A stretch of DNA of 64,000 nucleotides from Macrostomum lignano (Eukaryota), in the NCBI GenBank assembly GCA_002269645.1, contig NIVC01001200.1, positions 248,001 through 312,000 of the forward strand, read 5' to 3'. The position numbers and the translations under genes are program-made. The notes beneath the pieces were generated by a model. The model searched no databases. It saw only the letters and a list, made by a program, of their open reading frames with translations, and was not told the origin of the DNA. Below are positions 35,706 through 61,716 of this stretch, one piece after another. Numbering within the stretch: position 1 is the first letter of the stretch; each line of letters opens with the position of its first letter.

Positions 35706-37788
35706 ACATCTACATACGTTTTTAAAAAGTTTTAATGGTAAAACTAATTAAATACGGCTTTTGCTAGTTTCACAAAGTTATTCTTTTAATTAAGTTTGCA
35801 ACACAGTAAATAAACTTTATTATTTTGTTTCTTAATCTTTAAAAGCTTTATTTTTGTACACGATGATTGTATTGAGCGCATTTTTAACATTTGTAAACTT
35901 CGCAACTTCCGTTTCCTGGAAGGGTTTTAAGCTAATGCGTTTAAGCTAGAATATGTTCGCGGTGTTGTAGGGAACACACGCGTCTTTATTTTTTGCATTT
36001 CTGTACTACTCATAACAATAAAATGCCCATTAATAAGCAGGGTAAGTTACTGTTCATGTAATTAATACTAATATGTGACATCTCACACCTGTAAATTGCT
36101 ACAAAAGTGTTGTTCATTTCATTCTTTTACTGAGGTGTCAAATAATATAAGATAGGAAGCTAGCTGAATAAATTAGGAGTTTGGAATATCATTCTACAAC
36201 ACTACTCAAAATGTGTTTTGTCTGTAGCTTTGAAGAAGTAACAAGTATTTGAATAATTGAATTAATTGATTTTGACTTTCTTAATCTAGATATACTAAAT
36301 CTCTAAGGTTTGTATGTCCATAACGCTCTAGAGATTGCAATTCTTGACCAATTGGAATACTATTTTTATTGTTTAATAGGTATTTTTTCATTAGACTAAA
36401 TGATTTTTGGATTGAGATCTGAATTAAGGTGTTTCATAATTTCATTTTTCATATTAGTCTTCATACTATAGTATGAAATACATCCAAACATATAATGTTT
36501 AAAATAGGCTAGGCCCAACACATTTTTTGTGAATTAAGATTTACACTATTAGATGTGTTGTTATATGAAAAGGAACTACTATTAATTTTAGGTAAAAATA
36601 AATAAAAATGCATATTTTAGTTAAAAATACATGCAACAAGGACACCTTGATATCTGAAATGTGTATGGTAAAATATTGTATTTATTATATGCTAGAGGCT
36701 TAAGTTCATCACTCGAACGATTCAGGCGTTATTGAATTACATTCTCAGTTTACTCTGCATGCTTTGCCATTGTCAATCCTGCATGCTGACTTGTCAAATG
36801 AGAATGCATGCAATTGAAATTTAGCATTTTTTCTCTGATTCAGTTATAGTGTCTGCTTGCTTTTTTGAGAATTCACTCAATAATCAAATTTACAAAAAAA
36901 AAATTCAAGCAAACAGAAAAATGATGATATTCACTGGCCAGTAATAAAACTAATTATAAATGCTGTAAAGTAACAAACGCTGTCAATTTGATTGACATTC
37001 TCTGCCACAGATTTATTCACTACACAGATTTTACTCGATTTCGCCTAAGTAAAAAAGTCGATCACTTGAAATTCTTGGGGCCTCTGGAACAGCCGAGTCC
37101 ATCATCATTGAGCATGCACCAGCTGCCAGCGTGACAGAAGCGATGCCGCCCCCTCCATTTCCGATGTTCTCCGCCTGAGCAGTCCCAAATTCAATGCAGT
37201 CTGGAGTAGTTTCCCGTCCCGGCGCCTTCCGCCCTCAGAACTCAGAGGAGGAGACGCAGCGGCTGTGGGGCAGGAAAGACAGGGGATAATCAATTTGATT
37301 GACTAAATGAGTGGTAGGGGAGAGGCGCAGACTCCATTCCCGAAGACTTGCTGGTTTGGGGACTTGGCCGCAACCAACTCATGCATGAGACTCATTGCAC
37401 CTCATTGCGCTTCGCTTCCTCTTTCATTCTTGCTAAAGAAAACTTTTCTGTCAACGAGGTTTCTGCCGGCTTCGCCCCTCCCAGTTCGCCCCGCTGCATC
37501 TGCTGACTAGCGGCTGTAATTCAAGTTAGGTTGAAAGAATGAACTTTTGCTGCACTGCACCCGAAATTTGTCTTATTAAATGGAATCTCACTAAATTCAC
37601 GTTTAAAACACTGAAGTTTCATAGAAACTTGAATTATTACATGTCTGCTGCTCTGGACAGTGAAATTATATCGTTAAAAAAAACCAACCTTCTTAGAAAC
37701 CCGACCTTTCTGTAGCAAAAATCAATGAAGCAGATTTGATATCCGGATCTACTTTAATCTTTAGGATCTCAGTTCAAGGCAACGCCGT

Positions 37789-40700
37789 ATGCCTTTGCCA
37801 GCCCTTTCACCCATAGTCTGCGTCACCGATCCAAGTGACAGGCTCTAATCCGATCAAACTTATTTAGGTTTGTGATTAACACTGCAACTATAAGCTATAT
37901 TGCTGCTAGTATCAATTGGGCAAATTTGCCAGCGCTCACGCATGTCTACTGTGCTCAATTCCGTTTGACAGACGCGACTCGAGCCCTGGAGCTGCTTGAG
38001 CAGTACCAGACTCAGCTGAACGCGACCGAGGACGCTAAGCTGAGGGCCGCCATCGAGCGAGTCATTCGAATCTTCAAGTCCAAGCTGTTTAATGCTCTTG
38101 TCGGTGAGTGCAATAGTTACAGCTCATAACGGACTGAACTGTATTTTGGGAACACAAACATCTCTAGCTGTGCAGTCTCAGTTCACCCCCACCGGCCCTA
38201 ACACAGAAATTCAAGAGTTTTACGAGGTGACGCTGCTGGATGAGAACAAATCGTTGGAGCAGAAAGCGATGGAAACTCAGCGAGTTGCCGACCGATGGGC
38301 CGACGGGCCTCAGTCTGCGAATGGACCGACGAGGCAGCAGAAGGTGAGTCGCTTTTTGGCAAGCTGACGGAATAACCAGTGGCTGAGTCAGGCTATTCAG
38401 TGACTGGATAGCAGGCTATTCAGTGACTGGATAGCAGGCTATTCAGTGACTGGATAGCAGGCTGTTCAGTGACTGGATAACAGGCTATTCAGTGACAGGA
38501 TAACAGGCTATTCAGTGACTGGATAACAGGCTATTCAGTGACAGGATAACAGGCTATTTAGTAACTAAAGTAAACAATCCAGTGCTGGAAAAAGTTGTAA
38601 GAGAAAGGTCTTTAAAATCTAGAGCCTTCTGAGCAGCTTTGGTACTTACGTGGCACACTGTCAGGGCTGCAACACGCTATCGATCGGTCTAGCATTGATT
38701 TGCTTTTAGTGGGAAAAAAGTAAGACCTTTTTGTGTGCTTGCGTCTGCTGTACTCAAATTCTAAAACTCTTGCGTGAGTTGCCGCTACCGGCCAATTGGA
38801 TTTGCTTTCCCATGCAGCCTCAAGCCGAACCGACTGCTCCGAAGGCCAACTAGTAGAGCACTCTTGGCACAATTCTCGGTGCACAATTAGCCATGGTAGT
38901 CGAGCCCGGGTGCAAACTCGATTTTGCTGAGCGCTCGCCGACTTCAAGTCATTGAGAATTCAATTTGCAGTCCTGTTTCTCTGTCTCTCTCCGGATGTCT
39001 TGCAGCCATTTCTGTTGAAATGTTTTCGGAACGAGAGTCGTAGAAGAAGCGGAGAAGAATTGCAGCAGTTTGATTGCAGGTGCGCTCACTTCTGCCGCTG
39101 TCCCGAAGCAGGCAGGCGCTCACACGGGGTGTAAAAAGCGGCTTTGACTATTTCCAAAGCAATCCGATATTTCTGACCCATGCAGGCTTGTTCGGCCCAC
39201 CCTAACGACGGGAAGTCAGAATTCTGAAAGCTGGAACTGAGCCCAGGCTTAATTCCATAAATAAGTAGCCAAATATGTATGCAGAATAAAAAAGTTCAGC
39301 ATCGTCTCAGAGATGATTCAAACTGCCTGCCTGCCATGCCATTAAGCTGATGCGATGTGACATGCTCAATACCCGCGGGAGTGCCGGGAAAATGGAAATG
39401 CAATTTTAGAGACTTACTTTCCTGTGGAGAGTGCATCTGGTCCAGAGATGGGACTAAGTTGTTCAGGCCTTGCCGGCTACTTACTACTTACTCTCCGGGC
39501 AAGTAGTTGCTGCGCAAAAAGCTGTCGATTTATGGTAGAAGGTAGAAGCTGAAGCACGAGTATTAAGGCCCTGAACAAAACCGGAATTTGAAGCGAGCGA
39601 AAAACAAGTCGGCTACCCTCGCGTGGAAAACTTTGCACGCACGTCCCCCGCTTTTTCTAGAAACCCGCCGCACCGTCATCTCCGCCGCCGCCACCGCCGG
39701 ACTCGTCCGTCGGCGCCTTCGAGGTGGTGCTCCGTCGACTCGCCGGTCAGGGCTTCGGCTTCAGCATCGCTGGCGGAGTCGACGAGCCGCACCAGCCCGG
39801 CGACAGCCGCCTGTTCGTCACGAAGGTCGCGCCGGGTGGCGTAGCCGAATCCGACGGCCGGATGTCTGTCGGTGACGTCATTCTGGCCGTGAACGGCGTC
39901 GACGTCACCTCTGTGTCGCACGAGGCGGCCGTATCGGCGCTGAAGATGTCGGGCGCTCAGCTCAGTCTCCTCATGTTGAGGCCGCCGCCTCAGCCGCAGC
40001 CGGCTTTGAAACCGACAGCTGAAGCTGCGCCTCTGCCGGCTGAGCCGCCAGTTACCATGGAGACTGGCGCTGAGGCCAACGGAGGTACATTTCTACCTGC
40101 TTGAGTTTTTTAGCTGCTAATCCAGTAAATTCCAGGAATGTTTATCTTAATGACTCGTCATGTCAGAGATTTACTTCTCGACTTCTCGAACTCACCTCGG
40201 ACTCACCTCTCGGACTCACCTCCTCGGACTCACCTCTCGGACTCACCTCTCGGACTCACCTCTCGGACTCACCTCTCGGACTCACCTCTCGGACTCACCT
40301 CTCGGACTCACCTCTCGGACTCACCTCTCGGACTCACCTCTCGGACTCACCTCTCGGACTCACCTCTCGGACTCACCTCTCGGACTCACCTCTCGGACTC
40401 ACCTCTCGGACTCACCTCTCGGACTCACCTCTCGGACTCACCTCTCGGACTCACCTCTCGGACTCACCTCTCGGACTCACCTCTCGGACTCACCTCTCGG
40501 ACTCACCTCTCGGACTCACCTCTCGGACTCACCTCTCGGACTCACCTCTCGGACTCACCTCTCGGACTCACCTCTCGGACTCACCTCTCGGACTCAACTC
40601 TCGGACTCACCTCTCGGACTCACCTCTCGGACTCACTATTGAAGCTTCTCCCACCCAATGCGTCTCCCGTGTTGCAGGCGGCGGCCCGCTGGAGGTGACG

Positions 40701-43700
40701 CTGTCCAAGACGGCCCGCGGCCTGGGCTTCAGCATCGCCGGCGGGACGGACAATCAGCACCTGCCTGGCGACGACTCGATCTTCGTCACGAAGGTGATCG
40801 ACGGCGGCGCCGCGCAGCACAGTGGCCGCATCGGCTTCGGCGACCGCCTACTGGCCGTTGACGGCCGCCCGTTGACCGCCTGCACCCACCAGGAGGCCGT
40901 GGCCACCCTCAAAGCCACCGGCGACCGGGTCCGCCTCACCGTTGGCAAGGCGACGCCCGAGGAGGTCGCCCTGCTCATTGAGCTGGATGAGGCTGCTCGG
41001 TTGGAGGAACAGGAGGCTGAAGCTGCGGCTGCTGGTGAGTTGCTGACTCATCTGTATGTGCTCAGCTATGGTTGCTGACTCATCTGTATGTGCTCAGCTA
41101 TGGTTGCTGACTCATCTGTATGTGCTCAGCTATGGTTGCTGACTCATCTGTATGTGCTCAGCTATGGTTGCTGACTCATCTGTATGTGCTCAGCTATGGT
41201 CTCTGACTCATCTGTATTTGCTCAGCTATGGTTGCTGACTCATCTGTATGTGCTCAGCTATGGTTGCTGACTCACCTGTATGTGCTCAGCTATGGTTGCT
41301 GACTCATCTGTATGTGCTCAGCTATGGTTGCTGACTCATCTGTATGTGCTCAGCTATGGTTGCTCACTCATCTGTATGTGCTCAGCTATGGTTGCTGACT
41401 CATCTGTATGTGCTCAGTTTTGGTTGCTGACTCACCTGTATGTGCTCAGCTATGGTTGCTGACTCATCTGTATGTGCTCAGCTATGGTTGCTGACTCATC
41501 TGTATGTGCTCAGCTATGGTCTCTGACTCACCTGTATGTGCTCAGCTATGGTTACTGACTCATCTGTATGTGCTCAGCTATGGTTGCTGACTCATCTGTA
41601 TGTGCTCAGCTATGGTTGCTGACTCATCTGTATGTGCTCAGCTATGGTTGCTGACTCATCTGTATGTGCTCAGCTATGGTTGCTGACTCATCTGTATGTG
41701 CTCAGCTATGGTCTCTGACTCATCTTTATGTGCTCAGCTATGGTTGCTGACTCACCTGTATGTGCTCAGCTATGGTCTCTGACTCATCTGTATGTGCTCA
41801 GCTATGGTTGCTGACTCACCTGTATGTGCTCAGCTATGGTTGCTGACTCACCTGTATGTGCTCAGCTATGGTTGCTGACTCACCTGTATGTGCTCAGCCA
41901 GTCTCTGATTGGTTGCTGGCTTACCATTGCCATTTTACTGTAAAGTACTTTTATGTCTTGCGGCATTTCGCACCCCTATTTAAAGAAGGGTCTTTTCACT
42001 CTACTCGTATCAGTAGTGCGAGGTGTGCAATTTCGTTGAGCTTCCATTCAAATTAGTTAATTTTCAACCAGATCTGTTTGTCAATTCATTCATATTGCGC
42101 TTAACTACTCGGTAGTAGTCAGTACAGATTTGCATATAAATAAAATTTGGACGTTGCGTTTCGATTGGCGGAATTTGAAACTGTTGCTGAAGGTAAGCCC
42201 GAGTCCCGCTGGATCATAACCAGATTACTAGCTGCCTGTCGCATTCATATTATTAGTGTTGCCGACACACCTACGGCAGAATGCTACACTGTCTCCTGAG
42301 TCTGCCTATAGACCTCACTGCGAGTAGCGCTCATGATTTAATAACGGACCATAACTTCTCACTTTGCTCTTGAGTTCTTTTAGACCCCCCCCCAGGTTAA
42401 TGTTTAATCAGCCCCATTCATTTGTACCTTTGGCTTTGAAAACAGACTGAGAGTTTCAAGCATTCTGAGTTGACATGCTTTGCGTTTCTTTTTGTCATTT
42501 CTCTCGCTCAGGCTGGGTCTGGGCGTGCGTCTCTCCACGCATTACACTGAGTTTGACATTTTATTCTGCGTGTACAGATGGGTCAGCTGACCCAGCCAAT
42601 AAGTTTGTACAAGTGGGTCAGCTGACCCAGCCAATAAGTCTGTACAGATGGGTCAGCTGACCCAGCCAATAAGTCTGTACAAGTGGGTCAGCTGACCCAG
42701 CCAATAAGTCTGTACAAGTGGGTCAGCTGACCCAGCCAATAAGTCTGTACAGATGGGTCAGCTGACCCAGCCAATAAGTCTGTACAGATGGGTCAGCTGA
42801 CCCAGCCAATAAGTCTGTACAGATGGGTCAGCTGACCCAGCCAATAAGTCTGTACAGGTTGGTCAGCTGACCCAGTCAGTGTGTAGAAATTGGGTCAGCC
42901 ATCTCCTGACCCAGTCAGAGTGTAGAGATTGGGTCAGCCATCTCCTGACCCAGTGAGTGTGTAGAGATTGGGTCAGCCATCTCCTGACCCAGTGAGTGTG
43001 TAGAGATTGGGTCAGCCATCTCCTGACCCAGTGAGTGTGTAGAGATTGGGTCAGCCATCTCCTGACCCAGTGAGTGTGTAGAGATGGGGTCAGCCATCTC
43101 CTGACCCAGTGAGTGTGTAGAGATTGGGTCAGCCATCTCCTGACCCAATCAGAGTGCGGAGCCTGGGTCAGCTGATCAGCAGATTCTGAGTTCATTGAGT
43201 ATTCATTTATAAATGACATTGAGTCCGACAAGCTTCCGCTTTTTGTTCAGCAATGCTTGCATTACTAAATGCCCTTTGGATTTTGCTGATAGGCAATCGA
43301 AGCATTTATATTTTGAGTTATTTCTAATAATTTTAAGAGACTTTTCCTCAGAACTAAAATAATTTTGAGTTCTATCTACTTATTGCCTTTTCTGTTGGCT
43401 GACGAATGAGTACTTTATCAAATTCTTATTTTTAGCAATTTCCTCTAAGAAATTAATTTGATGCAGCGGCAGGATTCTGGACCCCCCAACCGCCCTCACT
43501 CACTGCAGGAGGGGCCGCTCGCGGACTGCCCGGCTCGACGAGACCCAGCAGACCCGACGCTCAGCAAAGGCATGGTAAGTGACTGAGCTGCATGACCATA
43601 CCCTGACTGAGCTGCATGACCATACCCTGACTGAGCTGCATGACCATACCCTGACTGAGCTGCATGACCATACCCTGACTGAGCTGCATGACCATACCCT

Positions 43701-46700
43701 GACTGAGCTGCATGACCATACCCTGACTGAGCTGCATGACCATACCCTGACTGAGCTGCATGACCATACCCTGACTGAGCTGCATGACCATACCCTGACT
43801 GAGCTGCATGACCATACCCTGACTGAGCTGCATAACCATACCCTGACTGAGCTGCATGACCATACCCTGACTGAGCTGCATGACCATACCCTGACTGAGC
43901 TGCATGACCAAAATCTGACTGAATTCATGACCATAATCTGACTGAATTTATAAAAAAATCTAACTAAACCCATGACCATAATCTGACTGAATTGATGACC
44001 ATAATCTGAATAAATCCATGACCATAATCTGACTGAATCCTTGATCTGCGCGTACCATGACAATACACGCAGAGCTGACTGAATCTATGACAATAATCTG
44101 ATGATATTCGCAGTCATGAGGTCACAATGCAGTCATGAGGTCACAATGCAGTCATGAGGTCACAATGCAGTCATGAGGTCACAATGCAGTCATGAGGTCA
44201 CAATGCAGTCATGAGGTCACAATGCAGTCATGAGGTCACAATGCAGTCATGAGGTCACAATGCAGTCATGAGGTCACAATGCAGTCATGAGGTCACAATG
44301 CAGTCATGAGGTCACAATGCAGTCATGAGGTCACAATGCAGTCATGAGGTCACAATGCAGTCATGAGGTCACAATGCAGTCATGAGGTCACAATGCAGTC
44401 ATGAGGTCACAATGCAGTCATGAGGTCACAATGCAGTCATGAGGTCACAATGCAGTCATGAGGTCACAATGCAGTCATGAGGTCACAATGCAGTCATGAG
44501 GTCACAATGCAGTCATGAGGTCACAATGCAGTCATGAGGTCACAATGCAGTCATGAGGTCACAATGCAGTCATGAGGTCACAATGCAGTCATGAGGTCAC
44601 AATGCAGTCATGAGGTCACAATGCAGTCATGAGGTCACAATGCAGTCATGAGGTCACAATGCAGTCATGAGGTCACAATGCAGTCATGAGGTCACAATGC
44701 AGTCATGAGGTCACAATACAGTCATGAGGTCACAATGCAGTCATGAGGTCACAATGCAGTCATGAGGCCACAATGCAGTCATGAGGTCACAATGCAGTCA
44801 TGAGGTCACAATGCAGTCATGAGGTCACAATGCAGTCATGAGGTCACAATGCAGTCATGAGGTCACAATGCAGTCATGAGGTCACAATGCAGTCATAAGG
44901 TCGCAATGCAGTCATGAGGTCACAATGCAGTCATGAGGTCACAATGCAGTCATGAGGTCACAATGCAGTCATGAGGTCACAATACAGTCATGAGGTCACA
45001 ATGCAGTCATAAGGTCACAATGCAGTCATGAGGTCACAATGCAGTCATGAGGTCACAATGCATCCGCCCCTCCACCCGCAGCGGGATTTCAAGGTCCGGC
45101 CGACGGCGCCCCGAGCAGCAGCAAGAAGTCCAAAGGACTCGGCGGCCTGTTTGGCGGCGGCAAGAAGAAATGAAAACAAATTGTGCTCCTTGCTGCTTCA
45201 AGAAGAGACAGAGCGCCTCTTCCCGTGTCTCGGCAATGCCTTGTACTTTTTTGGATCGGCTTAACCAGTGAAATTTGCTGAGTTTTAAATCTCTGAGGTG
45301 TTACTAAATTAGTAGTGCCGCTGTCACTTGTCGCTCCTGTCACTAGTCACCGAACCGTTAAAAACATTGATCACTCACCATTAATCATTATTTACACATC
45401 AACAGTTTCGCCCCCATGACCGAAAGTTTTTGTTTTACCGAGAATACCCAATCTTTACATTGCATTGTCGCAGCTGGTCAATTGGACATTCCCAGTTTAT
45501 TCTCTCAATAAACTGTAGCGTTTTAGACAATATACTTGCGATCGTGTGATAATGATAGCTTAGTTTTACGTTTTCCTCAACCAATTTCAAAGTGCACAAT
45601 ATACTTTGAAAAAATTCGGTCTCGAGTTCTCCCCATCAGTACTCGGTGGTCCGCGCCAGTTATTTTTGCAATCGGGAGCGGCCCGTGGAAGCAAAATCCG
45701 GTCTGGCGCAGCTGGCCAAGGCAGCGCTGCCGAAATCCCCCTCCCCGCCCAGCGCAGCTTTGACTCTGATGGCAGCTAAGGGGATTTCGCGCCTGAGAAA
45801 TGCATAGGGGATCGGCAGTGCTGCACTCTGTTGTGTCCCCACACTCGCTGGCCCTGTAATCACTGCTCTCACTGATGCTGCCGCGTCTCCCCCCCCCCCA
45901 ACTCGCTGTGTTTTTTGCTCCGCAGCCGTGCTCATTCATTCCTTCATCGGCCCCGGGGGGGGGGGGCTGTGACAGACTGCATGGCTGACTGGCTGGCTGG
46001 CTCGGTTTCAATCAGGCAGCGCAGATGAAGCAGAGAGGCTGCTGCAGCTCTGCCATCGGATATAATTTCAATCCGGTCCGCAGCGCCATGCGCGGTAATT
46101 ACTCGAGGAGGGGGGAGGCTGATGAGGCGCACCACGCACACGCGCACTGCGCCGGCTTGGGTTCCCATCGGGTCGGCTTCTCCTCTTCCCGGCCTGCTGC
46201 TGGTGTGCGGTTTCCGAGGGCTGCGGGCCCGCGCGGTTCATCGGCTGCGGACAATGCGGAAGCGATCTGGGGGATTCTGCTCCCCCATTCAAATCTGCCG
46301 GTGCAGCTTTCTGCTCTGCTGAGCAGCTCATCAGCTCCGCGTGTTGCAGAATTCGCTTATAGAGCTTGTATAGGCATGTCAGCGTGACGGATGGCGTTCT
46401 GTCTTTAGGTTTGTGTAGGCATGTCAGGGTGACGGATGGCGTGCTGTCTTCAGGTTTGTGTAGGCATGTCAGGGTGACGGATGGCGTGCTGTCTTCAGGT
46501 TTGTGTAGGCATGTCAGGGTGACGGATGGCGTGCTGTCTTCAGGTTTGTGTAGGCGTGTCAGGGTGACGGATGGCGTGCTGTCTTCAGGTTTGTGAAGTC
46601 ATGTCATTGTGACCTACCGTACATGTATTCTTTGACGCTTTTGTTTCATCTTACTAATCATAGAAAGATTTATTAGACTGTGTAAGTCAGGAGTTCAGAT

Positions 46701-49700
46701 GAGTTGTTACCTACAGCTAACAACAAACTTTCGAATTTGGGACCTGAGGGGTTGCTGGAATCTCAGCAGCTTATAGAAGCGCTGCTACCAGGTAGAAGCG
46801 TCTGATAGAAGCTTCAGTAAGCAGCTGACAGAGGTGAGGACTCTGAGCCACTGGGCACGCGCAGAGTTTCTCATACACTTCTTAACTCGGCGTGTTAGCT
46901 CAGCTCAGCCCACCGCCCCTGTAGGACTCAGCTAAGCACCCAAGGTGAGCCGTGGTGAGGCGGCGGTAAAAGTCCCGCACTGACTGGCCCCGGCCTCAGT
47001 GGGGGAGCAGCTCCCCCTTAATCCCGAGCAGGCCATAAGTGGAATTGGGCATTTCACTTTTTACACTTTTATGACCTGCGATTGCCTTCTGCGGCCTTCT
47101 ACGCTGCCCCCCCGGCCCCGCGTGTGGGACTTCGCGGCAAGGCCTGGATGCCCGCAGCTGCCTCCTCCCTCGCTTATCTTCCTACGGTTGTCTTTCCCCC
47201 TCCAGTCGGGGCTAAATTTATCCCTGAAACAGCTTCCTACCGCTTGTACTCCCATCGATCCCTGATCCCCTGGGGAAGTTCCGGGTGGCAACTCGAACGC
47301 CTGTCTGCCTGCCAGGCCGCCACGAAGAAGCTGAAAATAAACAGAAGCTGCAGCGCGACCCCGCCGCTCACCTGGCGCCTTCCAGCGCATCTTTCAGTTG
47401 AAACCTCTGCTTTTTGGAAGCAATTTTAGAGAGCCAAAGCGCCGCAAGCTAACGCTGCCTCTCTCTGCCCCCCTCTGCACTCTCGCTGAACAGCTTCGAG
47501 TGGCTCAGCGCGCGGCAGCCTTCGACAGTCGCGACCGCGGCAGCGTCGACTGCGTCAGCGGCGGCACTCGCTGTCGGCTGTTGGAGAGGCGCACTTGGAC
47601 GGCGAACTGAACGGTTGGACTAGGTGAGTAACGGCAGATGTGTGAATTAAAAATCTAGGTCTGTGAATGAGCAATGCAGATGTGTGAATGAGGACTTCAG
47701 ATGTGTGAATGAGAAGTTCAGATGTGTGAATGAGAAGTTCGGATGTGTTAATGAGGAATTTAGATGTGTGAATGACTATTTCAGATGTGTGAAGGAGGAA
47801 ATTAGATGTGTGAAGGAGGAAATTAGATGTGTGAAGGAGGAGTTCAGATGTGTGAATGAGAAGTTCAGATGTGTGAATGAGGAGTTCTGATATGTGCATG
47901 AAGAATTCAGATGTGTGAATTAGGAATTCAGATGCGTGAATGAGGAATTCAGATGTGTGAATGAGGAATTCAGGTGCGTGAATGAAGAGTACAGATGTGT
48001 GAATGAGGGAATGCTAATAATAAACACAGCCAGAGACAAGAAAAGCCACATAATAGAGGCCAATAGGCAATATGGGTGATGGCCAATGGTCCAGTTTCCA
48101 AGCCAGAGCACTCATTATTCAAGAAATTTCAACTCTTTCATTCCGAATCGCGGAAGTCATTCGATCTGCGCCTTGCGATTTTCTCCGGCGGTCAATGCGG
48201 CCGGTCTGCCTCCCCCGGGACCGTCGGTGGACCGGCCGAAGTCTCCCACGGCAGGATGCGTACTGGAATTCTTTCAAGTCGCCGGCCTCCCATTTCCCCT
48301 CACTAAAAGGTCCGGGTCAGAGATCCGCAATGCCTATTTGCTATTCAAAGCGGCCTCAAATCTCCCTTAACTCCCGTCGGACTCAAACCGGCAACCTACC
48401 AACGCGAGTCTGGGGTTCGAATCTTGGTCCAACTTCTTCCTGGCCTCCTCCGTTGCCCCCCCCCCAGACTCTCCGCTCGTTTTTCGGTCGACTTGCCGCC
48501 ACGCATCGCTGACTCAAATCTGCTCAGCCTGCCCAGGCCTGAGCGCTGCGGCAGCCTCGGCCAAGCAGCATGCAGGAGCCGGACTTCCTGCCCCTCAGCT
48601 GCCTGACAGGGGACTCTCCCCTCTCCCCCTCTCCTTCTCTCTCCCTCTCTCCCTCTCTCCCTGTCTGCCTCTATCTCCCTCTCCCCCTCTCGCCCTCTCC
48701 CTCTCTTCCCCTCTCCCTCTCTCCCCATCTCCCTCTCACCCTCTCTCCCTCTCTCCCCCTCTCCCTCTCTCCCCCTCTCCCTCTCTCCCCATCTCCCTCT
48801 CTCCGCCTCCACCTCTCCCCCTCTCCCTCTCTCCCCCTCTCCCTCTCTCCCCCTCTCCCTCTCTCCCTCTCTCCCTCTCCTCCTCTGCCCCTCTCCCTCT
48901 CTCCCTCTCTAATTCTCTCCTTCTCTCTCCCCGCCTCTCCCTATCTCTCTCTACCTCTCTCCGCTCGGTGTCTCCTACCTACCTCTCTGAAGCATCCTCT
49001 CACTCTTTCCCAATCTCTCCACTCTCCACTTCTCATTCTCACCCTGGATCTCCCTCTCCCGGTATCAATTTCCTTGCCCTCCGTGCCCCCCTCTCCCCTC
49101 CCTCCACCCCGCTAGCCCGGTGCCCCCCAGCAGCAGCCGCTGACCCCAGCAGCAGGAAGTCGCAAGGCGCTGCCGCGGTCTTGGTGGGACTCGAGCAGCG
49201 GTGGCCGAGAGTGCAGCGGCGGCCGCGGTCACCGTCCGCCTGCCTCTGCCATTCCCTCTCGCTTCCCAGCTCCTCTCCGCCTCGCCACTTCCCACTGGCT
49301 CTCCCCGAGCTGCCATGGGGATTTACGCGCCCTCTTCTCCCTTCCTGCCCTCGCCCCTCTGCCCCGCTACCGAAGGCCACACTTTCCCCGCCCCTTCTGC
49401 CAGTAAATATATAGAGGCTGCGGCCGAGGGCAGGCAGAGAGGAAGAAGAGGCCCAAGCCCCTCCCGTGCCGCAGCCGCATCCGCCGCAGTTTCCAAGCCC
49501 CATCGCCCCGAAACTGCTTGTTCCTCTTTGAACTGGCGGCCTGCAGCAGACAGCAAGAAGCAAGCGGAACGCAAGAAAAGTTTCTTTCTGCATCGCTGCC
49601 CCCAGGCGAAGCCAAGCCGTAGAATAAAGGAGACGCTTCCCCTTTTCCCCGCCGGCGCCGAGGCCTCCCCCGCATAGCAGCGGCACGCTAAACAGTTTAT

Positions 49701-52700: not shown

Positions 52701-55700
52701 CAGATGTAGATTATGCCTGTCTAACAGGTGCAGATTGAGTCTGTCTAACAGGTATAGCTTATGCCTGTCTAACAGGTGTAGATTATGCCTGTCTAACAGG
52801 TGTAGATTATGCCTGTCTAACAGGTGCAGATTGAGTCTGTCTAACAGGTATAGCTTATGCCTGTCTAACAGGTGTAGATTATGCCTGTCTAACAGGTATA
52901 GATTATGCCTGTCTAACAGGTATAGATTATGCCTGTCTAACAGGTGTAGATTATGCCTGTCTAACAGATGTAGATTATGTCTGTCTAACAGGTTCAGATT
53001 ATGCCTGTCTAACAGATGTAGATTATGCCTGTCTAACAGGTGTAGATTATGCCTGTCTAACAGGTTCAGATTATGCCTGTCTAACAGGTGCAGATTATGC
53101 CTGTCTAACAGGTGTAGATTATGCCTGTCTAACAGGTTCAGATTATGCCTGTCTAACAGGTGTAGATTATGCCTGTCTAACAGGTTCAGATTATGCCTGT
53201 CTAACAGGTGCAGGTTTTGCCTTAACAGGTATCAGACGGTGGCTAGGACACAGAAGCAGTGGCCATTGTTATTTCGGGGCCTTATCAACCCAAATGAGGT
53301 GAGCATTACCCACCCAGCAGCCAGACAGATGCAGGCCCGCCTACAGACCCTGGACGGGTTGTCTGCTCTGGGAGACTGGCAAAAATTATGCATAGATGAG
53401 GCCGCATCCCGCTTTGCTCTAGGCCAGGGAGATCCTGAACCATGATCTGGAAAGCCAGTTCTTCCTCAAATCCTCATTTTCCAGACGCGATTGGGCTGGC
53501 AGGTGCTTGATGTATATTTTTATTAACTCGATCTTATTTTAATGTTGACAAGAATTCTCAGCATCTCGCTTCAAAGTCATCTCGATTTCCTAGATATGGA
53601 CTGCGTAGTGCTTCCGATGGAACTCTAAAAAAGCAAAAAAAATCTACATTTTTACAGGTACCGATAGATTTCATGACGTCCAACTGTTTGACTCCATTGT
53701 CTCCAATGACGGACACTGAGTCAGTCAGGAACCCCGCCAGGAAGTCTGGGGATTTGGCAGGAGTCCGCGCTCCAGACTCTGGTTCAAGGCCTCCTTGGCC
53801 AGGCCCTGTAATTTACCCCCCCCCCCGAGACCGCATCGGGGTGTGCGCTCACATTGATTGATGAAGCCAGGCCTGATTAAGATCGGCCAGGAGTCTGTGA
53901 CGCATTTTGAGCAGCGCCGCATCGCCGGGTGAATATCGTCTGAGAGCAGTCGAACTTTGTTGTTCTTTGCTCCCAACGGGATAATTTTAGCCGACTCTGC
54001 TGACGCGCGGGGAGCAAGGGGGGAGTATTTTCCTCTGGGATTCAGAAATAGCTCTTCCCCTCGCCCCCTCTCCCGCCTCCACTTTCCTAAGGGCGGGGGC
54101 TGATCGATCAGCAGCATCATCATCGCTCTCAGGCATCCCCCGATCTATTTATAGAAGCCGAGAGTTCGGGCTATTTTCGGGCAGGGGTTGCGTCACTGCT
54201 TGCAGAAGAGAGAGGGGGGAATCCCGCCTAGGGCTGAGCTGCAGCTGGCAGAGCCGCCCCCGCTTATCCGACCCGGTTGAGCAGCTCCTGCGCTGCCAAA
54301 TTTCTGTCTTTTTTTATCTCAGCTGCCTGCTGCGCCTTTCCGCCTCCACTTGCTGTGCCGCAGCCAGTTTGAATAGTGAGCTGATAAGCAGCAGGTTGGG
54401 GGGGGTCTTATCTCCTAGCGCTGACCCCGCAGACAGACAGGCCCAGCTTGGAGACACCCGGCCCAGAGCTGGGGGTGCATTGTAGCTTCTCAGCCGAGCT
54501 GCTGCCACCTTCACCCCAACTCCCACTTCTCTTCAGTGCAGCTGACTTGGGATCTGGGAAAACCAGCAGCTGTCAGACTGGGAATCGATGGAGAGAAAAA
54601 TCCCGCCTCGGAAGGCGTCTCTTGCGGAAACGTTTGACAATTTGCAGCAGAATCTGACATGAACTGGCGCCATCGCTTTGAGTATCAGGGATGCACCACT
54701 GTGTGTTAAATAGAATGCCTTAGGCTCTCTAAGCGTCAGGCATGTAACACTCTCTGCGCCTTAGGAGTTGGCCCTCACGGGTGGGTGGAACTCCATTTTC
54801 AAATACTTTCTGCATCGCAACAACTCACTTTTGCACTGGCAGCATCATTTCTCAATGAAAGCGAACGCTTGCATCGGAGATGAGCCGAAAATCCCGGCAG
54901 AGATAAGCAGCAGGCTCAGACCGCCTGCCGTCTGTCAGGGGGAGGCGGGGGAGGCAACGCCAGCCTGGGGAGGCCAAGAGTAGCCTGTGTGACTGCGGCT
55001 CATTTGTACGGCCACCCAAAACCCCCTCAACTGCTTCCCCCCCAAAAAAAGCCGGCCTGGCAACAAATCAGCCAAGCGGAAGGCGGTGACACCAGCCAGA
55101 CTCCACTCTGCTCAGCTGCTCAGCTACCCCCCCCCCCCTCCTCCAGCCTGGCATTGGGGCGCGGTGGGCACCCAGTGGTAAAGGGCAGGGGATGACAAGC
55201 AGGCGGGCGGAACCAGAGCATAAAATAACAAGCGGCAGCCCGGCGCGCTACACCATCTTCATTCATCTTCAAGTCACTTGACGAATTTCCGCAGGGAGCC
55301 CCGCCAGGTGCTGCTGAGCCTCGACCCCGGTTGCAGCAGCTCCGGCAGCAGCAGCGCCAACGGCAGCAGCGGCGGAGGCCCCGGCCTCGGCTTCAACATT
55401 GTCGGCGGCCAGGACGGCGCCGGCGTCTTCGTGAGCGGCCTGCTGCCAGGCGGCATCGCCGAGCGCTCCCGACGACTGCGCCGCGGTGACCAGCTGCTGG
55501 CGGTGAACGGCGCCGACCTCTGCCGGGCCGGACACTGCGAAGCGGCCGCGGCTCTCAAATCGGCGGTCGCGGCGGCAGCAGCGGCAAGCAAAAGCGGCAA
55601 GGCGGGCGCGGTGCAGCTGCTGGTCGCCTACCGGCCAGAGGAGTTCACGCGGTTCCAAGCGCGGGTCCTGCGGGCCAAAGAGCTTCAGCAGCAACAGCAG

Positions 55701-57515
55701 GCAGCGGCCGCGGCGGCAGAGGCAATGCTCCCAACGGCTGATGCTGACGGTGACGCGGACGTCGGCACGGCGACGCTGAAGACAACGCAGAAGCGCAGCG
55801 TCTACGTCCGAGCTGAGTTCGACTTCGACCCGGCGCGCGAGTCCGGGCTGCCGAACCGCGGCATCGCCTTCCGGCGCGGCGACATCCTGCACGTCACCAA
55901 CGCCTCCGACGACGAGTGGTGGCAGGCGCGCCGAGTTGGCAACTCCGGCAGCCAGGCCAGCTTCGGCATCGTGCCGTCCAAGCGACGGGTTGAGCGGCGC
56001 GAGCGGGCAAAGCTGCGCAAAGTCAACTTCAACAACAGCCGCAGCGGCAGCGGCGGAGGCGGCTCGACCGAGACCAGCCTCGACGGCAGCAGCGGCGGCA
56101 GAGGCGGCGGCGGCTCGCTGGACCGCAGCTCCGCCAAGAAGAAGCCGTCATTGCTGCAGCGGCTGCACATCGGCCACCACCACCACCACCACCATCACCA
56201 CGACCACCAGTCCGGCCAGCAGCAGCGAAGCCTCCAGGAAGACGACGACGACTTGGTCTCGGCGGCCGCGACAGCTTCGGGTGGCTCCACCGAGGCCGGC
56301 AGCCAGCGAATTCCGTCCTACGAGCTGGTGCGGCAGACCAAGCCAACGGCCACCCGGCCAATCATTCTGCTGGGCCCGCTGCGCGACCAGCTTAACGACG
56401 CCCTGGCCAGCAACTACCCGGACCGGTTCGCCAGCTGCGTTCCGCACACCACCCGGGCGCCGCGGGAGGGCGAGGAGGACGGCCGGGACTACCACTTCGT
56501 GGCCAGCCGCGAGCAGATGGAGCGGGACATCGCCGGCCAGCAGTTCGTGGAGGCCGGCCGCTACAACGGCAATCTGTACGGCACCTCCGTCCAGAGTGTC
56601 CGGGCCGTGGCGGACAGCGGCCGGCACTGCATCCTGGACGTGTCCGGCCAGGCCATTCGGCGGCTGGAGGCGGCCGGCCTGCACCCTATTGTGATCTTCC
56701 TGCGGCCGCTGGCGCCAGAGAACATCGCGCAGCTGCGGCCGGAGGTCGGGCCAGAGCAGGCGGCCGCGCTGTTTGAGAAGGCCGGCAAGATCGAAGCAGA
56801 GTTCGGCAGCATGTTCACTGGTGAGGCCTCGCATGTCAGACAATGTGTCAGAAAAAATGTCAAGGAATTTGTGTCGAAAAAATGTGTCAAAAAAGACGAA
56901 TGTCAACGGTTTGTCAGACGAATGTCAGACGGTTCATCGAATGTCGGACGGTTCATCGAATGTGGGACGATGTGTCACACGAATTAATGTCGAATTTTGA
57001 ACGAATGTGTCAGACGAAGTGTCAGACGATGTGTCAGACGAATGTGTCAGACGATGTGTCAGACGAATGTGTCAGACGATGTGTCAGAAGAATGTGTCAG
57101 ACGATGTGTCAAGCGAATGTGTCAGACAAATGTGTTGGAATGCCAGAATGTCAGACTATGCATTCAAAATAATTTCAGACGATCTGTCCGTTAAAAACAT
57201 TTCGGATGTTGTGTCAGGTGAATATCTTGCGGTGTGTGGTGTGTCAGGAAAACCATAGTAATTTGCACCAGGCGGTGTCAGTAAAACCCAGTCAGCCAGT
57301 TTCAAATTATTTTATTCATGCAAAGCTGGGCGTGAACATTCAGATAGGAATTCACCCGGTCGCTCGCTTATCCCTGACCGACTCAAACCAAACCCGACCC
57401 TGCAGCCGCTGTCTCGGGCAGCACAGTGGAGGACCTGTTCGCCCAGGTCAGGCGCGTCATCGCCCAGCACTCCGACCAGATGGTGTGGGTCGCCTGCACC
57501 GACGACCAGCTGTGA
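37789..57515 (+). CDS. DLG1: Discs large (L27-PDZ1-PDZ2-PDZ3-SH3-HOOK-GK MAGUK), full-length isoform ~990 aa. Exons: 37789-37834 (tentative), 37972-38103, 38207-38343, 39661-40084, 40678-41034, 43467-43574, 47494-47623, 55295-56820, 57406-57515
   Basis: L27 ATRALELLEQY...[30 protein letters not shown]; PDZ1 GFGFSIAGG; PDZ2 [31 protein letters not shown]|EPRQV junction in phase 2; SH3 YVRAEFDFDPARESGLPNRGIAFRRGDILHVTNASDDEWWQARRV; GK VPHTTR...GRDYHFV...EAGRYNGNLYGTSV; C-terminus MVWVACTDDQL*. All phases are consistent. AATAAA at 57857 and 58128. Confidence 0.95.
38389..38562. repeat. Intronic 23-bp tandem repeat CAGGCTATTCAGTGACTGGATAR
   Basis: About 7.5 copies starting 45 nt after the donor at 38344. 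Confidence 0.95.
40190..40636. repeat. Intronic 13-bp tandem repeat GGACTCACCTCTC
   Basis: About 34 nearly identical copies between the PDZ1 and PDZ2 exons. Confidence 0.97.
41039..41899. repeat. Intronic 32-bp tandem repeat GTTGCTGACTCATCTGTATGTGCTCAGCTATG
   Basis: About 27 copies, beginning inside the donor site GTGAGT of the PDZ2 exon. Confidence 0.97.
42572..43174. repeat. Two adjacent related arrays: a 35-bp unit (~9 copies), then a 39-bp unit (~7.5 copies)
   Basis: The 35-mer contains the palindrome GGGTCAGCTGACCC; the 39-mer contains GGGTCAG-ccatctc-CTGACCC. Confidence 0.95.
43580..43910. repeat. Intronic 24-bp tandem repeat GACTGAGCTGCATGACCATACCCT
   Basis: About 14 copies starting at donor +6, decaying into shorter variants up to ~44100. 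Confidence 0.95.
44110..45062. repeat. Intronic 19-bp tandem repeat GCAGTCATGAGGTCACAAT
   Basis: About 50 near-perfect copies ending ~20 nt before the acceptor at 45081. Confidence 0.97.
45082..45173 (+). CDS. DLG1: Putative alternative terminal exon of Dlg (AGFQGPADGAPSSSKKSKGLGGLFGGGKKK*)
   Basis: Acceptor CCCTCCACCCGCAG, phase 1 matching the upstream donors at 41034 and 43574; GC-rich codon style; stop at 45171-45173; AATAAA at 45507-45512. Confidence 0.7.
46372..46594. repeat. 45-bp tandem repeat
   Basis: About 5 copies of GTAGGCATGTCAGGGTGACGGATGGCGTGCTGTCTTCAGGTTTGT. Confidence 0.95.
47635..48007. repeat. Diverged 21-bp intronic repeat CAGATGTGTGAATGAGGAATT
   Basis: Starts ~12 nt after the donor at 47624. 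Confidence 0.9.
48616..49115. repeat. Polypyrimidine (CT/CCT-rich) low-complexity tract, ~500 bp
   Basis: The + strand is almost entirely C/T. Confidence 0.95.
49942..50813. repeat. Intronic 18-bp tandem repeat CCTGACACAAACTCATTC
   Basis: About 48 copies. Confidence 0.97.
51400..51690. repeat. Intronic 12-bp repeat GTGAGACAGCAA
   Basis: About 20 diverged copies. Confidence 0.9.
52297..53228. repeat. Intronic 24-bp tandem repeat CTGTCTAACAGGTGTAGATTATGC
   Basis: About 39 copies with variants GTGCAG, GTATAG and GTTCAG. Confidence 0.97.
56832..57135. repeat. Diverged short-period repeat (ATGTGTCAGACGA core) in the last Dlg intron
   Basis: Begins ~10 nt after the donor at 56821. Confidence 0.85.
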
Positions 57516-58216
57516 TCTGCCGCGGTTCACTGCAGCGGAAGCCGACTCTTGCACAGTCGCGCCAGTCACTGAGCCGCCCATTTTACACGCTCAACAAATG
57601 TGCTTATCTGCTTAGCCAATGTTCTCAGTGACAGTTCTTAAGCGCCCGCGCCCAGTATTTGGAAGCCAGCCGGCACCCCCTGCTGTGCAGCCCCACCCCC
57701 CGGCAGTAGAAGGAAAAGAGGCTTTATTTCTTAGAAAAGGCTGGCTTCAGGCGAAAAATGCACTGCCGAGATGTACCTTGAACAGTATTGAACAGCCAAT
57801 GAAATTAATGATGCGGTGACACCTACTCGTGCAACATGAGCAGGAGTTGATTGAAGAATAAATTGAAAATACGATGCCTCGCACAAAAAAGCAATTCTTA
57901 TCTTGGAAGTGTACTTTGAGCGTCAAGCAGGCCTTCAAATCATGCTTTCTAAGAAATCTTTATATCCTTCTAACTGCGTATTCCTGGAGTCTCTATAAAT
58001 TGTATTCTCGCACCCGTTCTCAGATGGATCAGCAAAAGCCCGGCCGGCCTGAGCTCACTGAGTGAATTGAACTTCAAAATCTTGCTTTTGTCGCTGCCTG
58101 GAAGCGGCCATTCTAGCGATACGCCTCAATAAACCAAACTCAGTCTTGTACTCGGATTTTCAGATAAATCCCTTCGGTCCGCGGCATGCCTCTCAGTTAT
58201 TTGACGGCTAAAGGCC

Positions 58217-61200
58217 ACTGGGGAATATGGGGAGCCAGGGACAGATGAAGCAGGGGGATTCTGCATTGGGGAATATGGGGAGCATGGGACAGATGAAGCA
58301 GGGGGATTCTGCATTGGGGAATATGGGGAGCCAGGGACAGATGAAGCAGGGGGATTCTGCATTGGGGAATATGGGGAGCCAGGGACAGATGAAGCAGGGG
58401 GATTCTGCATTGGGGAATATGGGGAGCCAGGGACAGATGAAGCAGGGGGATTCTGCATTGGGGAATATGGGGAGCCAGGGACAGATGAAGCAGGGGGATT
58501 CTGCATTGGGAAATATGGGGAGCCAGGGACAGATGAAGCAGGATTCTGCACTGGGGAATTATGGGGAGCATGGGACAGATGAAGCAGGATTCTGCACTGG
58601 GGAATTATGGGGAGCATGGGACAGATGAAGCAGGATTCTGCATTGGGAAATATGGAGAGCATGGGACAGATGAAGCAGGATTCTGCATTGGGGAATATGG
58701 GGAGCATGGGACAGATGAAGCAGGGGGATTCTGCACTGGGGAATATGGGGAGCCAGGGACAGATGAAGCAGAGGGATTCTGCACTGGGGAATATGGGAGA
58801 GCCAGGGACAGATGAAGCAGAGGGATTTTGCACTGGGGAATATGGGAGAGCCAGGGACAGATGAAGCAGGATTCTGCACTGGGAAATATGGGGAGCATGG
58901 GACAGATGAAGCAGGGGGATTCTGCATTGGGGAATATGGGGAGCATGGGACAGATGAAACAGGATTCTGCACTGGGGAATATGGGGAGCCAGGGACAGAT
59001 GAAGCAGGGGGATTCTGCATTGGGGAATATGGGGAGCCAGGGACAGATGAAGCAGGGGGATTCTGCATTGGGGAATATGGGGAGCCAGGGACAGATGAAG
59101 CAGGGGATTCTGCATTGGGAAATATGGGGAGCCAGGGACAGATGAAGCAGGATTCTGCACTGGGGAATTATGGGGAGCATGGGACAGATGAAGCAGGATT
59201 CTGCACTGGGGAATTATGGGGAGCATGGGACAGATGAAGCAGGATTCTGCATTGGGAAATATGGAGAGCCAGGGACAGATGAAGCAGGGGGATTCTGCAC
59301 TGGGGAATATGGGGAGCATGGGACAGATGAAGCAGTGGGATTCTGCACTGGGGAATATGGGGAGCATGGGACAGATGAAGCAGAGGGATTCTGCATTGGG
59401 GAATATGGGGAGCATGGGACAGATGAAGCAGGATTCTGCACTGGGGAATATGGGGAGCCAGGGACAGATGAAGCAGGATTCTGCACTGGGGAATATGGGG
59501 AGCATGGGACAGATGAAGCAGGATTCTGCACTGGGGAATATGGGGAGCATGGGACAGATGAAGCAGGGGGATTCTGCATTGGGGAATATGGGGAGCATGG
59601 GACAGATGAAGCAGGGGGATTCTGCACTGGGGAATATGGGGAGCATGGGACAGATGAAGCAGGATTCTGCACTAGGAAATATGGGGAGCATGGGAAAGAT
59701 GAAGCAGGGGGATTCTGCACTGGGGAATATGGGGAGCATGTGACAGATGAAGCAGGGGGATTCTGCACTGGGGAATATGGGGAGCATGTGACAGATGAAG
59801 CAGGATTCTGCACTGGAGAATATGGAGAGCCAGGGACAGATGAAGCAGGATTCTGCACTGGGGAATATGGGGAGCATGGGACAGATGAAGCAGAGGGATT
59901 CTGCATTGGGGAACATGGGGAGCCAGGGACAGATGAAGCAGGATTCTGTACTGGGGAATATGGGGAGCATCGGACAGATGAAGCAGGGGGATTCTGCACT
60001 GGGGAATATGGGGAGCATGGGACAGATGAAGCAGGATTCTGCACTAGGAAATATGGGGAGCATGGGACAGATGAAGCAGGGGGATTCTGCACTGGGGAAT
60101 ATGGGGAGCCAGGGACAGATGAAGCAGAGGGATTTTGCACTGGGGAATATGGGAGAGCCAGGGACAGATAAAGCAGGATTCTGCACTGGGAAATATGGGG
60201 AGCATGGGACAGATGAAGCAGGGGGATTCTGCACTGGGGAATATGGGGAGCCAGGGACAGATGAAGCAGGGGATTCTGCACTGGGGAATATGGGGAGCCA
60301 GGGACAGATGAAGCAGGGGGATTCTGTATTGGGGAATATGGGGAGCATGGGACAGATGAAGCAGGATTCTGCACTGGGGAACATGGGGAGCCAGGGACAG
60401 ATGAAACAGGATTCTGCACTGGGGAACATGGGGAGCCAGGGACAGATGAAGCCGGATTCTGTACTGGGGAATATGGGGAGCATCGGACAGATGAAGCAGG
60501 ATTCTGCACTGGGGAACATGGGGAGCATGGGACAGATGAAGCAGGGGGATTCTGCACTGGGGAATATGGGGAGCCAGGGACAGATGAAGCAGGGGGATTC
60601 TGCACTGGGAAATATGGGGAGCATGGGACAGATGAAGCAGGATTCTGCATTGGGGAATATGGGGAGCATGGGACAGATGAAGCAGGGGGATTCTGCACTG
60701 GGGAATATGGGGAGCATGGGACAGATGAAGCAGGATTCTGCACTGGGGAACATGGGGAGCCAGGGACAGATGAAACAGGATTCTGCACTGGGGAACATGG
60801 GGAGCCAGGGACAGATGAAGCCGGATTCTGTACTGGGGAATATGGGGAGCATCGGACAGATGAAGCAGGATTCTGCACTGGGGAACATGGGGAGCATGGG
60901 ACAGATAAAGCAGGGGGATTCTGCACTGGGGAATATGGGGAGCATGGGACAGATGAAGCAGGATTCTGCACTGGGAAATATGGGGAGCATGGGACAGATG
61001 AAGCAGGATTCTGCATTGGGGAATATGGGGAGCATGGGACAGATGAAGCAGGGGGATTCTGCACTGGGGAATATGGGGAGCCAGGGACAGATGAAGCAGA
61101 GGGATTCTGCACTGGGGAATATGGGAGAGCCAGGGACAGATGAAGCAGAGGGATTTTGCACTGGGGAATATGGGAGAGCCAGGGACAGATGAAGCAGGAT

Positions 61201-61716
61201 TCTGCACTGGGGAATTATGGGGAGCATGGGACAGATGAAGCAGGATTCTGCACTGGGGAATTATGGGGAGCATGGGACAGATGAAGCAGGATTCTGCATT
61301 GGGAAATATGGAGAGCATGGGACAGATGAAGCAGGATTCTGCATTGGGGAATATGGGGAGCATGGGACAGATGAAGCAGGGGGATTCTGCACTGGGGAAT
61401 ATGGGGAGCCAGGGACAGATGAAGCAGGGGGATTCTGCACTGGGAAATATGGGGAGCATGGGACAGATGAAGCAGGATTCTGCATTGGGGAATATGGGGA
61501 GCATGGGACAGATGAAGCAGGGGGATTCTGCACTGGGGAATATGGGGAGCATGGGACAGATGAAGCAGGATTCTGCACTGGAGAATATGGGGAGCCAGGG
61601 ACAGATGAAGCAGGATTCTGCACTGGGGAATATGGGGAGCCAGGGACAGATGAAGCAGGATTCTGTACTGGGGAATATGGGGAGCCAGGGACAGATGAAG
61701 CAGGATTCTGCACTGG
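58217..61716. repeat. 3.5-kb G-rich minisatellite, 45-49-bp unit, between the convergent Dlg and Atg16 3' ends
   Basis: Roughly 75 copies of TGGGGAGC(CA/AT)GGGACAGATGAAGCAG(GGG)GATTCTGCAYTGGGGAATA; this is the source of the 1033, 632, 565 and 465 aa pseudo-ORFs. Confidence 0.97.

Follow-up and report, generated by a model that had tools for sequence, protein, structure and literature searches.

A candidate short Dlg scaffold with its own last exon and a conserved basic tail in the flatworm Macrostomum lignano

Dlg is a central scaffold protein of cell polarity and of synapses, and its activities are usually credited to the SH3-HOOK-GK region and the PDZ domains jointly. Here we describe a Dlg gene of the flatworm Macrostomum lignano in a stretch of 64,000 nt (contig NIVC01001200.1, positions 248,001 to 312,000 of assembly GCA_002269645.1), referred to below as the window. 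An exon with its acceptor at 45082 appears, from sequence and annotation together, to be a genuine last exon, and ends a protein that consists of L27, PDZ1 and PDZ2 followed by a basic tail. We count this exon as real because a transcript-based gene model matches it and because the tail that it encodes is conserved. The full explanation, in which the exon is an alternative last exon of a Dlg gene and the short form is an independent scaffold, we hold with a probability of about 0.6; that the short form has a job of its own is probable.

The short form and its gene models

Pfam places the domains on the forward strand in the order L27_1, PDZ1, PDZ2 and then PDZ3, SH3 and Guanylate_kin. The L27_1 domain of the beta-type Dlg proteins is present (PF09058, E=5e-19, reading frame 37839-38126), PDZ matches lie at 39661-40101 and 40650-41075, and PDZ, SH3 and Guanylate_kin all fall inside one open frame at 55224-56984. 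The best database matches to the assembled short protein are Dlg-like proteins of M. lignano, while the locus is 40-47% identical to vertebrate and mollusc Dlg and keeps the IQEFYEVTLLD and REPR motifs. A preliminary description of this DNA, made from the sequence alone, had placed two acceptors, which it took to compete, at 45082 and 47494, a 30-codon exon with an in-frame stop behind the first, and an AATAAA at 45507; these positions, the stop (at 45171-45173) and all exon phases proved correct. The exons are as follows, with a slash marking a splice junction.

36023-36041, +, first coding exon, with the ATG, MPINKQ plus one base, phase 1; equals the N-terminus of PAA70891.1
37972-38103, +, L27 exon a; Pfam L27_1 E=5e-19, splice sites read
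38207-38343, +, L27 exon b and linker (IQEFYEVTLLD...), ending in phase 0; identical in P0241 (PAA70891.1)
39661-40084, +, PDZ1 exon, phase 0 to 1; Pfam PDZ E=2e-20
40678-41034, +, PDZ2 exon, donor G/GTGAGT in phase 1, the last exon common to the short and long paths; Pfam PDZ E=5e-19
43509-43574, +, small symmetric cassette exon of the GenBank models, 66 nt, phase 1-1; P0001 and P0241 read ...AAAAGGAARGLPGSTRPS...
43467-43574, +, longer version of the small exon, 108 nt, phase 1-1; acceptor ...gatgcag/, donor ATG/GTAAGT
45082-45173, +, alternative last exon, coding part, (A)GFQGPADGAPSSSKKSKGLGGLFGGGKKK, with TGA at 45171-45173; equals the C-terminus of PAA70891.1
45174-45530, +, presumed 3' untranslated region of the short mRNA, with AATAAA at 45507-45512
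47494-47623, +, distal exon of the putative long path, phase 1 to 2, 130 nt, encoding SSGSARGSLRQSRPRQRRLRQRRHSLSAVGEAHLDGELNGWT
55295-56820, +, PDZ3-SH3-HOOK-GK in a single exon; Pfam PDZ, SH3, Guanylate_kin E=9e-49
57406-57515, +, last exon of the GK path, ending AVSGSTVEDLFAQVRRVIAQHSDQMVWVACTDDQL and stop; same junction in P0246

The spliced model that includes the 66-nt exon is residue for residue the GenBank protein PAA70891.1 (BOX15_Mlig020975g1, 408 residues), which terminates in KKSKGLGGLFGGGKKK directly before the stop. By this identity the terminal exon has its own acceptor (AG at 45080-45081), is joined to the shared upstream donors and ends in an in-frame stop, as an alternative last exon does. 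The GenBank annotation was made from RNA-seq with StringTie/TACO, and its mRNA ends were set by poly(A) and spliced-leader (trans-splice) reads (PMC5730564). The short form is therefore a transcript-supported product of the locus, and in the 5' half it is the only product in the public RNA-seq-guided annotation. The preliminary description had called the exon hidden, which it is not: it is the annotated end of the coding sequence in three genomic copies, and two UniProt models from an older assembly (A0A1I8G0E8 and A0A1I8FVW7) also use it, splicing 41034 straight to 45082. Beyond the stop, the copies of the locus differ within 45174-45530 as much as introns do (2.0-2.8%), and the AATAAA at 45507 is the sole AATAAA or ATTAAA within 1 kb.

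The small exon varies between models. A 108-nt symmetric exon had been proposed and is indeed present, but the inner acceptor at 43509, which gives the 66-nt version, is the one used by all three GenBank copies of the short gene, and models P0003 and P0243 skip the exon. The product accordingly has 408 residues with the 66-nt exon, 422 with the 108-nt exon and 386 with neither, rather than the approximately 430 first suggested. Copies g2 (PAA60257.1) and g3 share this structure, and the g2 protein departs from that of g1 at three residues. A 29-kb stretch of NIVC01001200.1 (L015; assembly Mlig_3_7) agrees with the window in every base, its position 10001 corresponding to window 36023. Near-identical copies of the locus occur elsewhere in the assembly: one (L001) runs colinear with the window, its long non-repeat blocks being about 94-99.5% identical, and a third (L014, carrying g3, on NIVC01000578.1) is 95-99% identical to the window in the exons and flanks compared. 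Three genomic copies fit the known redundancy of the M. lignano assembly (PMC5730564).

As the gene models show, the shared exons (ATG at 36023, L27, PDZ1, PDZ2) are spliced from the phase-1 donor at 41034, usually through 43509-43574, to the acceptor at 45082. We propose that the mRNA would be cleaved about 10-30 nt past the AATAAA at 45507. Skipping of the 45082 exon and splicing to 47494 would instead give canonical full-length Dlg. Without SH3-HOOK-GK the short protein would lack the polybasic membrane domain of Dlg and the GK partners, and it could serve as an independent scaffold that keeps the L27 partners and the ligands of PDZ1-2, with the conserved Lys/Gly/Leu-Phe C-terminus as a targeting signal. 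In hDlg, PDZ1-2 alone suffices for targeting to cell contacts via 4.1/ERM proteins and T/SXV ligands (PMC2133382).

A literature search turned up no publication about M. lignano Dlg or the tail of its short form, and yielded nothing specific on natural L27-PDZ1-2 isoforms of Dlg; the transcript names (Mlig020975 and others) are not mentioned in the papers searched or in the supplements of two M. lignano papers. The short isoform is one already in GenBank as an uncharacterised model, and a lineage-specific form of the truncated MAGUK isoform.

A short-only paralog and a conserved tail

A paralog of the gene, BOX15_Mlig003967 (P0005, 407 residues, 63% identical), is found in three genomic copies (L004, L005 and L006), here called the B-type loci as opposed to the A-type locus of the window. 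Its 3' layout repeats that of the window gene: a phase-1 PDZ2 donor leads to a 69-nt symmetric exon, itself polybasic (PPMPVKKGSKKDKKKKGSESGHD), and then to a phase-1 terminal exon ending KKGKGIGSLFGMKKK and stop, so that the protein has the C-terminus ...KAKKGKGIGSLFGMKKK. PDZ3, SH3 and GK are absent within 10 kb downstream in all three B-type loci, and a Rad1 gene on the opposite strand, annotated in two of the three copies, lies 0.8 kb past the stop. The AP-mu-like gene upstream of paralog B and that of the window are themselves paralogs with 88-90% identity, which indicates that the window and B loci descend from one duplicated segment. To judge from these arrangements, the terminal exon is older than the A/B duplication, and one daughter retained the short form alone. 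The preliminary description had left it open whether the short form would be a separate scaffold or a dominant-negative; a stand-alone gene that makes the short form only favours a separate scaffold over a mere dominant-negative.

The sequences that follow PDZ2 can hardly be aligned at all except for their last 16-17 residues, where the motif KK-x-KG-[LI]-G-x-LFG-(x)-KKK, directly before the stop, is the sole conserved block. Two cDNA contigs from Logan (L002 and L003; 1310 and 1556 bp; SRR28338165 and SRR30276804) carry it as well. Both are intronless, one retains an Illumina adapter, and they encode proteins of 415 and 414 residues ending KKGKGIGGLFGKKKK and stop. As these proteins are 84% and 75% identical to P0005, the contigs stem from relatives. 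The tail codons differ synonymously among the sequences (GGA/GGC/GGT, CTG/TTG and TTT/TTC), and a stop codon stands at the same position of the tail in all four, in three kinds (TGA, TGA, TAA and TAG). From this pattern of codon change, we regard the tail motif as being under purifying selection. Conservation in relatives, a matter raised in the preliminary description, is seen for the tail in the two RNA-seq contigs, and the L27-PDZ1-PDZ2-basic tail protein of that description is supported by the identity to PAA70891.1 and the retention of the tail in the paralog and in these contigs.

By motif scan, every A-type and B-type locus contains the tail a single time, and a third dlg locus (L007) has no tail-like exon. 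With a profile of the tail region, HMMER recovered only the Macrostomum family (P0007, E=4e-27) and an unrelated Lys-repeat protein (P0252) from 1.84 billion representatives; no homolog outside the Macrostomum lineage was detected there, with a short profile of low power. The same profile gave no match among 5.8 billion proteins, a search that is uninformative as it did not recover its own inputs either, probably through low-complexity filtering.

Membrane binding or nuclear import by the tail

The tail has about 16 residues, a net charge of +6 and three hydrophobic residues. Its basic-hydrophobic index was calculated in 19-residue windows with approximate scale values, so that the following figures are approximate as well; the usual threshold is 0.6.

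Tail of the window gene: 0.39
Tail of the paralog group: 0.48-0.66
HOOK polybasic stretch of the window locus: 0.70
Arg-rich stretch of the 47494 exon (RQSRPRQRRLRQRRHS): 0.84

The exon at 47494 on the long path is thus more polybasic than the short tail, and both paths add a basic segment of their own behind PDZ2.

As the preliminary description correctly stated, Dlg has a polybasic lipid-binding segment: it spans SH3 and HOOK, binds phosphatidylinositol 4-phosphate (PI4P) and phosphatidylinositol bisphosphate (PIP2), and has an index of 0.90 (Lu et al., bioRxiv 10.1101/2020.10.08.331603). Taken by itself, the tail would bind membranes weakly, but could become effective through the added avidity of L27 and PDZ contacts.

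The alternative reading that survives best, although we think it improbable at something like one chance in four, is that the tail is a nuclear-localisation signal (NLS) and that the short form may be a nuclear or shuttling Dlg fragment. The tail fits the classical bipartite NLS pattern (a pair of basic residues, a spacer of 10-12 residues and a basic cluster) equally well, with KK-X11-KKK in the window gene and KK-X10-KKK(K) in P0005, P0004 and P0007, and this spacing of 10-11 residues between KK and the terminal KKK(K) is held in all four sequences despite indels. The paralog carries a second cluster, KKGSKKDKKKK, and a low basic-hydrophobic index speaks against strong lipid binding. The polybasic domain of Dlg itself acts like an NLS once the GUK domain is removed (Lu et al., bioRxiv 10.1101/2020.10.08.331603). 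This, however, is a case built on a pattern match, and the conserved hydrophobic core ([LI]-G-x-L-F) is unneeded for an NLS while being typical of basic-hydrophobic membrane motifs. To our knowledge a Gly-rich spacer is also unusual among characterised bipartite signals. We consider weak electrostatic and hydrophobic membrane binding, with avidity from the L27 and PDZ domains, to be slightly more likely than nuclear import.

Four other roles for the tail were rejected. A KKXX/KXKXX endoplasmic reticulum retrieval signal does not fit, as the ends are GGKKK (GMKKK in P0005) with no Lys at -4/-5, and no transmembrane segment is evident. As a PDZ-binding C-terminus KKK fits no ligand class; a cyclin RxL or "RxLFG" docking motif would have an Arg or Lys two residues ahead of the Leu, and there is none; and a single GLFG is far too weak alone for a nucleoporin-type FG motif.

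One gene with two ends or two genes

An in-frame model of 944-980 residues from L27 to GK can be constructed at the locus. The annotation assigns the 3' half to a gene of its own, BOX15_Mlig026046 g1-g3 (P0246-P0248), of 401 residues. The coding sequence of BOX15_Mlig026046g1 begins at an internal Met at 55725, the first Met after an upstream stop, leaving PDZ3 untranslated; this gene model probably lacks its true 5' end. The pieces needed for the long path are in place. The stretch 47494-47623 is without an in-frame ATG, has an in-frame TGA directly upstream and is open exactly from its acceptor, and the exon matches the phase of the PDZ2 donor. Its lead in phase 2 into PDZ3-SH3-GK, one of the initial proposals, is upheld by an in-frame join to the conserved REPR motif (...NGWT/REPRQVLL at 55295). 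Between genomic copies, the PDZ3 segment (55296-55724, 429 nt) shows 2 changes, both synonymous, and no indels, while the introns on either side show about 2.7% difference and 5-6 indels per kb, a rate at which about 12 changes would be expected in PDZ3. Because of the constraint on PDZ3, its lack of an ATG and the phase-matched, in-frame 47494 exon, we think it likely, at about three chances in four, that a full-length Dlg form exists.

The main challenge to the long form is gene fission, in which an L27-PDZ1-PDZ2-tail gene always ends near 45530, an independent SH3-GK gene follows downstream and no full-length Dlg is made. There are two transcript clusters in all three copies (Mlig020975, 408 residues, against Mlig026046, 401 residues from Met 55725), no long model is among the database matches, and the paralog B locus shows that the short form can stand as its own gene. 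Fission leaves unexplained, however, why a PDZ3 without an in-frame ATG should be intact (Pfam E=2e-13) and should change between copies as coding sequence does, with 2 synonymous substitutions and no indels against the approximately 12 substitutions expected, or why 47494-47623 should be open from its acceptor, in a phase that fits the PDZ2 donor, and in frame with REPR. Isoforms that fell short of 0.75 of the major one were removed when the M. lignano annotation was made (PMC5730564), so a minor long form would have been dropped, and its absence from the annotation is weak evidence. We judge fission unlikely, at around one chance in five. A spliced leader giving an AUG to PDZ3 was also considered and set aside: if the leader ends in AUG, the 47494 and 55295 acceptors would both miss the PDZ3 frame.

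The third and more distant dlg locus (L007; NIVC01000759.1, 1-17805) is also split in the annotation. Its 5' part is a 527-residue L27-PDZ-PDZ model with an end that resembles intron read-through, and its 3' part is a 5'-partial PDZ3-SH3-GK model of 532 residues (P0123). The WD40 gene downstream of the window locus has no counterpart in L007, and no shared downstream synteny was shown. In the window, the HOOK-GK linker (56200-56330) contains a run of nine His together with Gly/Ser-rich and Gln/Ala-rich stretches; other Dlg proteins are not known to have these.

A third reading takes the short mRNA for a product without function, left by premature cleavage and polyadenylation within a long, repeat-filled intron and ending in a meaningless tail; it is very improbable and has largely been refuted by conservation already. 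In its favour, a 30-codon frame and one AATAAA are within chance, the g3 copy is frameshifted, and truncated MAGUK mRNAs from intronic poly(A) sites such as MAGI3pPA are known (PMC8428372), yet the terminal exon has its own acceptor, its motif, phases and stop position are kept in a paralog of 63% identity, its motif and stop are kept with synonymous changes in the cDNA contigs of two relatives, and the paralog encodes the short form only.

Several points nevertheless weigh against an alternative last exon that makes a membrane-targeted scaffold. No database protein or public model unites PDZ2 with PDZ3-SH3-GK here, so that "alternative" is something we infer. For use of the junction, abundance and a poly(A) site near 45530, the basis is the deposited annotation together with one AATAAA, and by themselves a 30-codon open frame and one AATAAA are within chance. 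Between recent genomic copies the tail exon has one non-synonymous change and displays no excess constraint. In the g3 copy a 1-nt deletion in a C4 run (L014 18543-18681; window 45061-45200) frameshifts the tail, giving a product of 438 residues (P0242) from which the tail is lost; this is either a long-read homopolymer or assembly error, or a real loss or relaxed constraint. Finally, the index of the tail, 0.39 in the window gene and 0.48-0.66 in the paralog group, lies under or about the 0.6 threshold and does not reach the 0.90 of the Dlg domain, so that the tail falls short of a membrane motif by this measure.

Repeats and neighbouring genes

The introns across 41000-48200 carry distinct minisatellites with units of 19-45 nt in up to 50 copies. 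Arrays were located with TRF.

41039-41898, minisatellite array
42571-43172, minisatellite array
43580-44038, minisatellite array
44110-45062, minisatellite array
46366-46613, minisatellite array
47635-48008, minisatellite array
43580-45062, the intronic arrays before the terminal exon: a 24-mer x15 (43580-43945), a degenerate 45-mer, and the 19-mer GCAGTCATGAGGTCACAAT x50 (44110-45062)

Three of the arrays begin about 4-12 nt past a donor site. The array of the 19-mer GCAGTCATGAGGTCACAAT stops 19 nt before the 45082 acceptor, and every one of its 50 copies contains an AGGTCA half-site. Two further, long tandem-repeat tracts, at 14300-15900 and 58129-61775, have an extreme GC skew of 0.44-0.61 (2-kb windows) and no stop in several of their frames; most likely they are just ordinary minisatellites, in which this genome is rich. 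A neighbouring gene on the reverse strand (2561-7036) is an intronless open frame of 1492 residues with PH, MyTH4 and RA-like domains.

Comparison with known systems

A broader proposal would be that in macrostomid flatworms the N-terminal half of Dlg has become a separate class of protein, L27-PDZ1-PDZ2 plus a lineage-specific, selected tail signal. The signal would take the place of the SH3-HOOK polybasic domain, and the protein would be made both as an isoform of full Dlg and, after duplication, by a short-only gene. We offer this tentatively, since we put it at clearly less than an even chance, at roughly three in ten. If true, it would be a natural isoform externalised into a gene, or a MAGUK caught in mid-fission, and a clean case of duplicated genes dividing isoforms between them. 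The short form would also be a natural separation-of-function allele that could reveal the role of the N-terminal half of Dlg alone, in an animal that is amenable to transgenesis and RNA interference. For annotators, the 3' half has been filed as a separate or partial gene here and at the third dlg locus, and here a coding-like PDZ3 has been left outside the coding sequence.

The gene resembles the Dlg/SAP97 beta-type MAGUKs (Drosophila DlgS97, vertebrate DLG1/SAP97) in having L27_1, PDZ1 and PDZ2 with PDZ3-SH3-HOOK-GK downstream on the same strand. It differs from them in that the RNA-supported product stops after PDZ2 with a lineage-specific Lys/Gly tail, and in that PDZ3-SH3-GK occupies a single large exon, 10 kb downstream, which the annotation gives to a different gene.

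Like known polybasic domains, the tail is a disordered segment in which a Lys cluster is accompanied by a few hydrophobic residues, and it could bind PI4P/PIP2 electrostatically. As with the polybasic domain of Dlg (Lu et al., bioRxiv 10.1101/2020.10.08.331603), it can be read either as a polybasic domain or as an NLS. The polybasic domains used for comparison are longer, at 20-40 residues with an index of about 0.9-1.0, whereas the tail has about 16 residues, a charge of +6 and an index of 0.39; it is C-terminal, Gly-rich and not homologous to them.

Further predicted short Dlg isoforms in other animals are found among the database matches. Mollusc-like Logan cDNA contigs (P0062 and P0074; L008-L013) likewise encode L27-PDZ1-PDZ2 only, in about 406-414 residues, P0074 having been assembled in five independent RNA-seq runs. 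These proteins end in ...PRKKRPK or ...PRSKKSQR. Unlike in the window gene, their stop is reached because a donor (GTAAAG or GTAAGA) is left unspliced and read through, which makes a composite terminal exon, and they have neither a dedicated exon nor the GLFG-KKK motif.

The short form also recalls MAGI3pPA, in which an upstream poly(A) site strips the C-terminal modules from a PDZ scaffold; truncated MAGUKs of this type can compete with the full-length protein and act as dominant-negatives (PMC8428372). MAGI3pPA, however, is cancer-associated and its site is a cryptic intronic one, whereas in M. lignano there is a dedicated exon with its own acceptor, a conserved tail and a short protein that is the annotated main product, and the short form has become fixed as a separate gene in the paralog.

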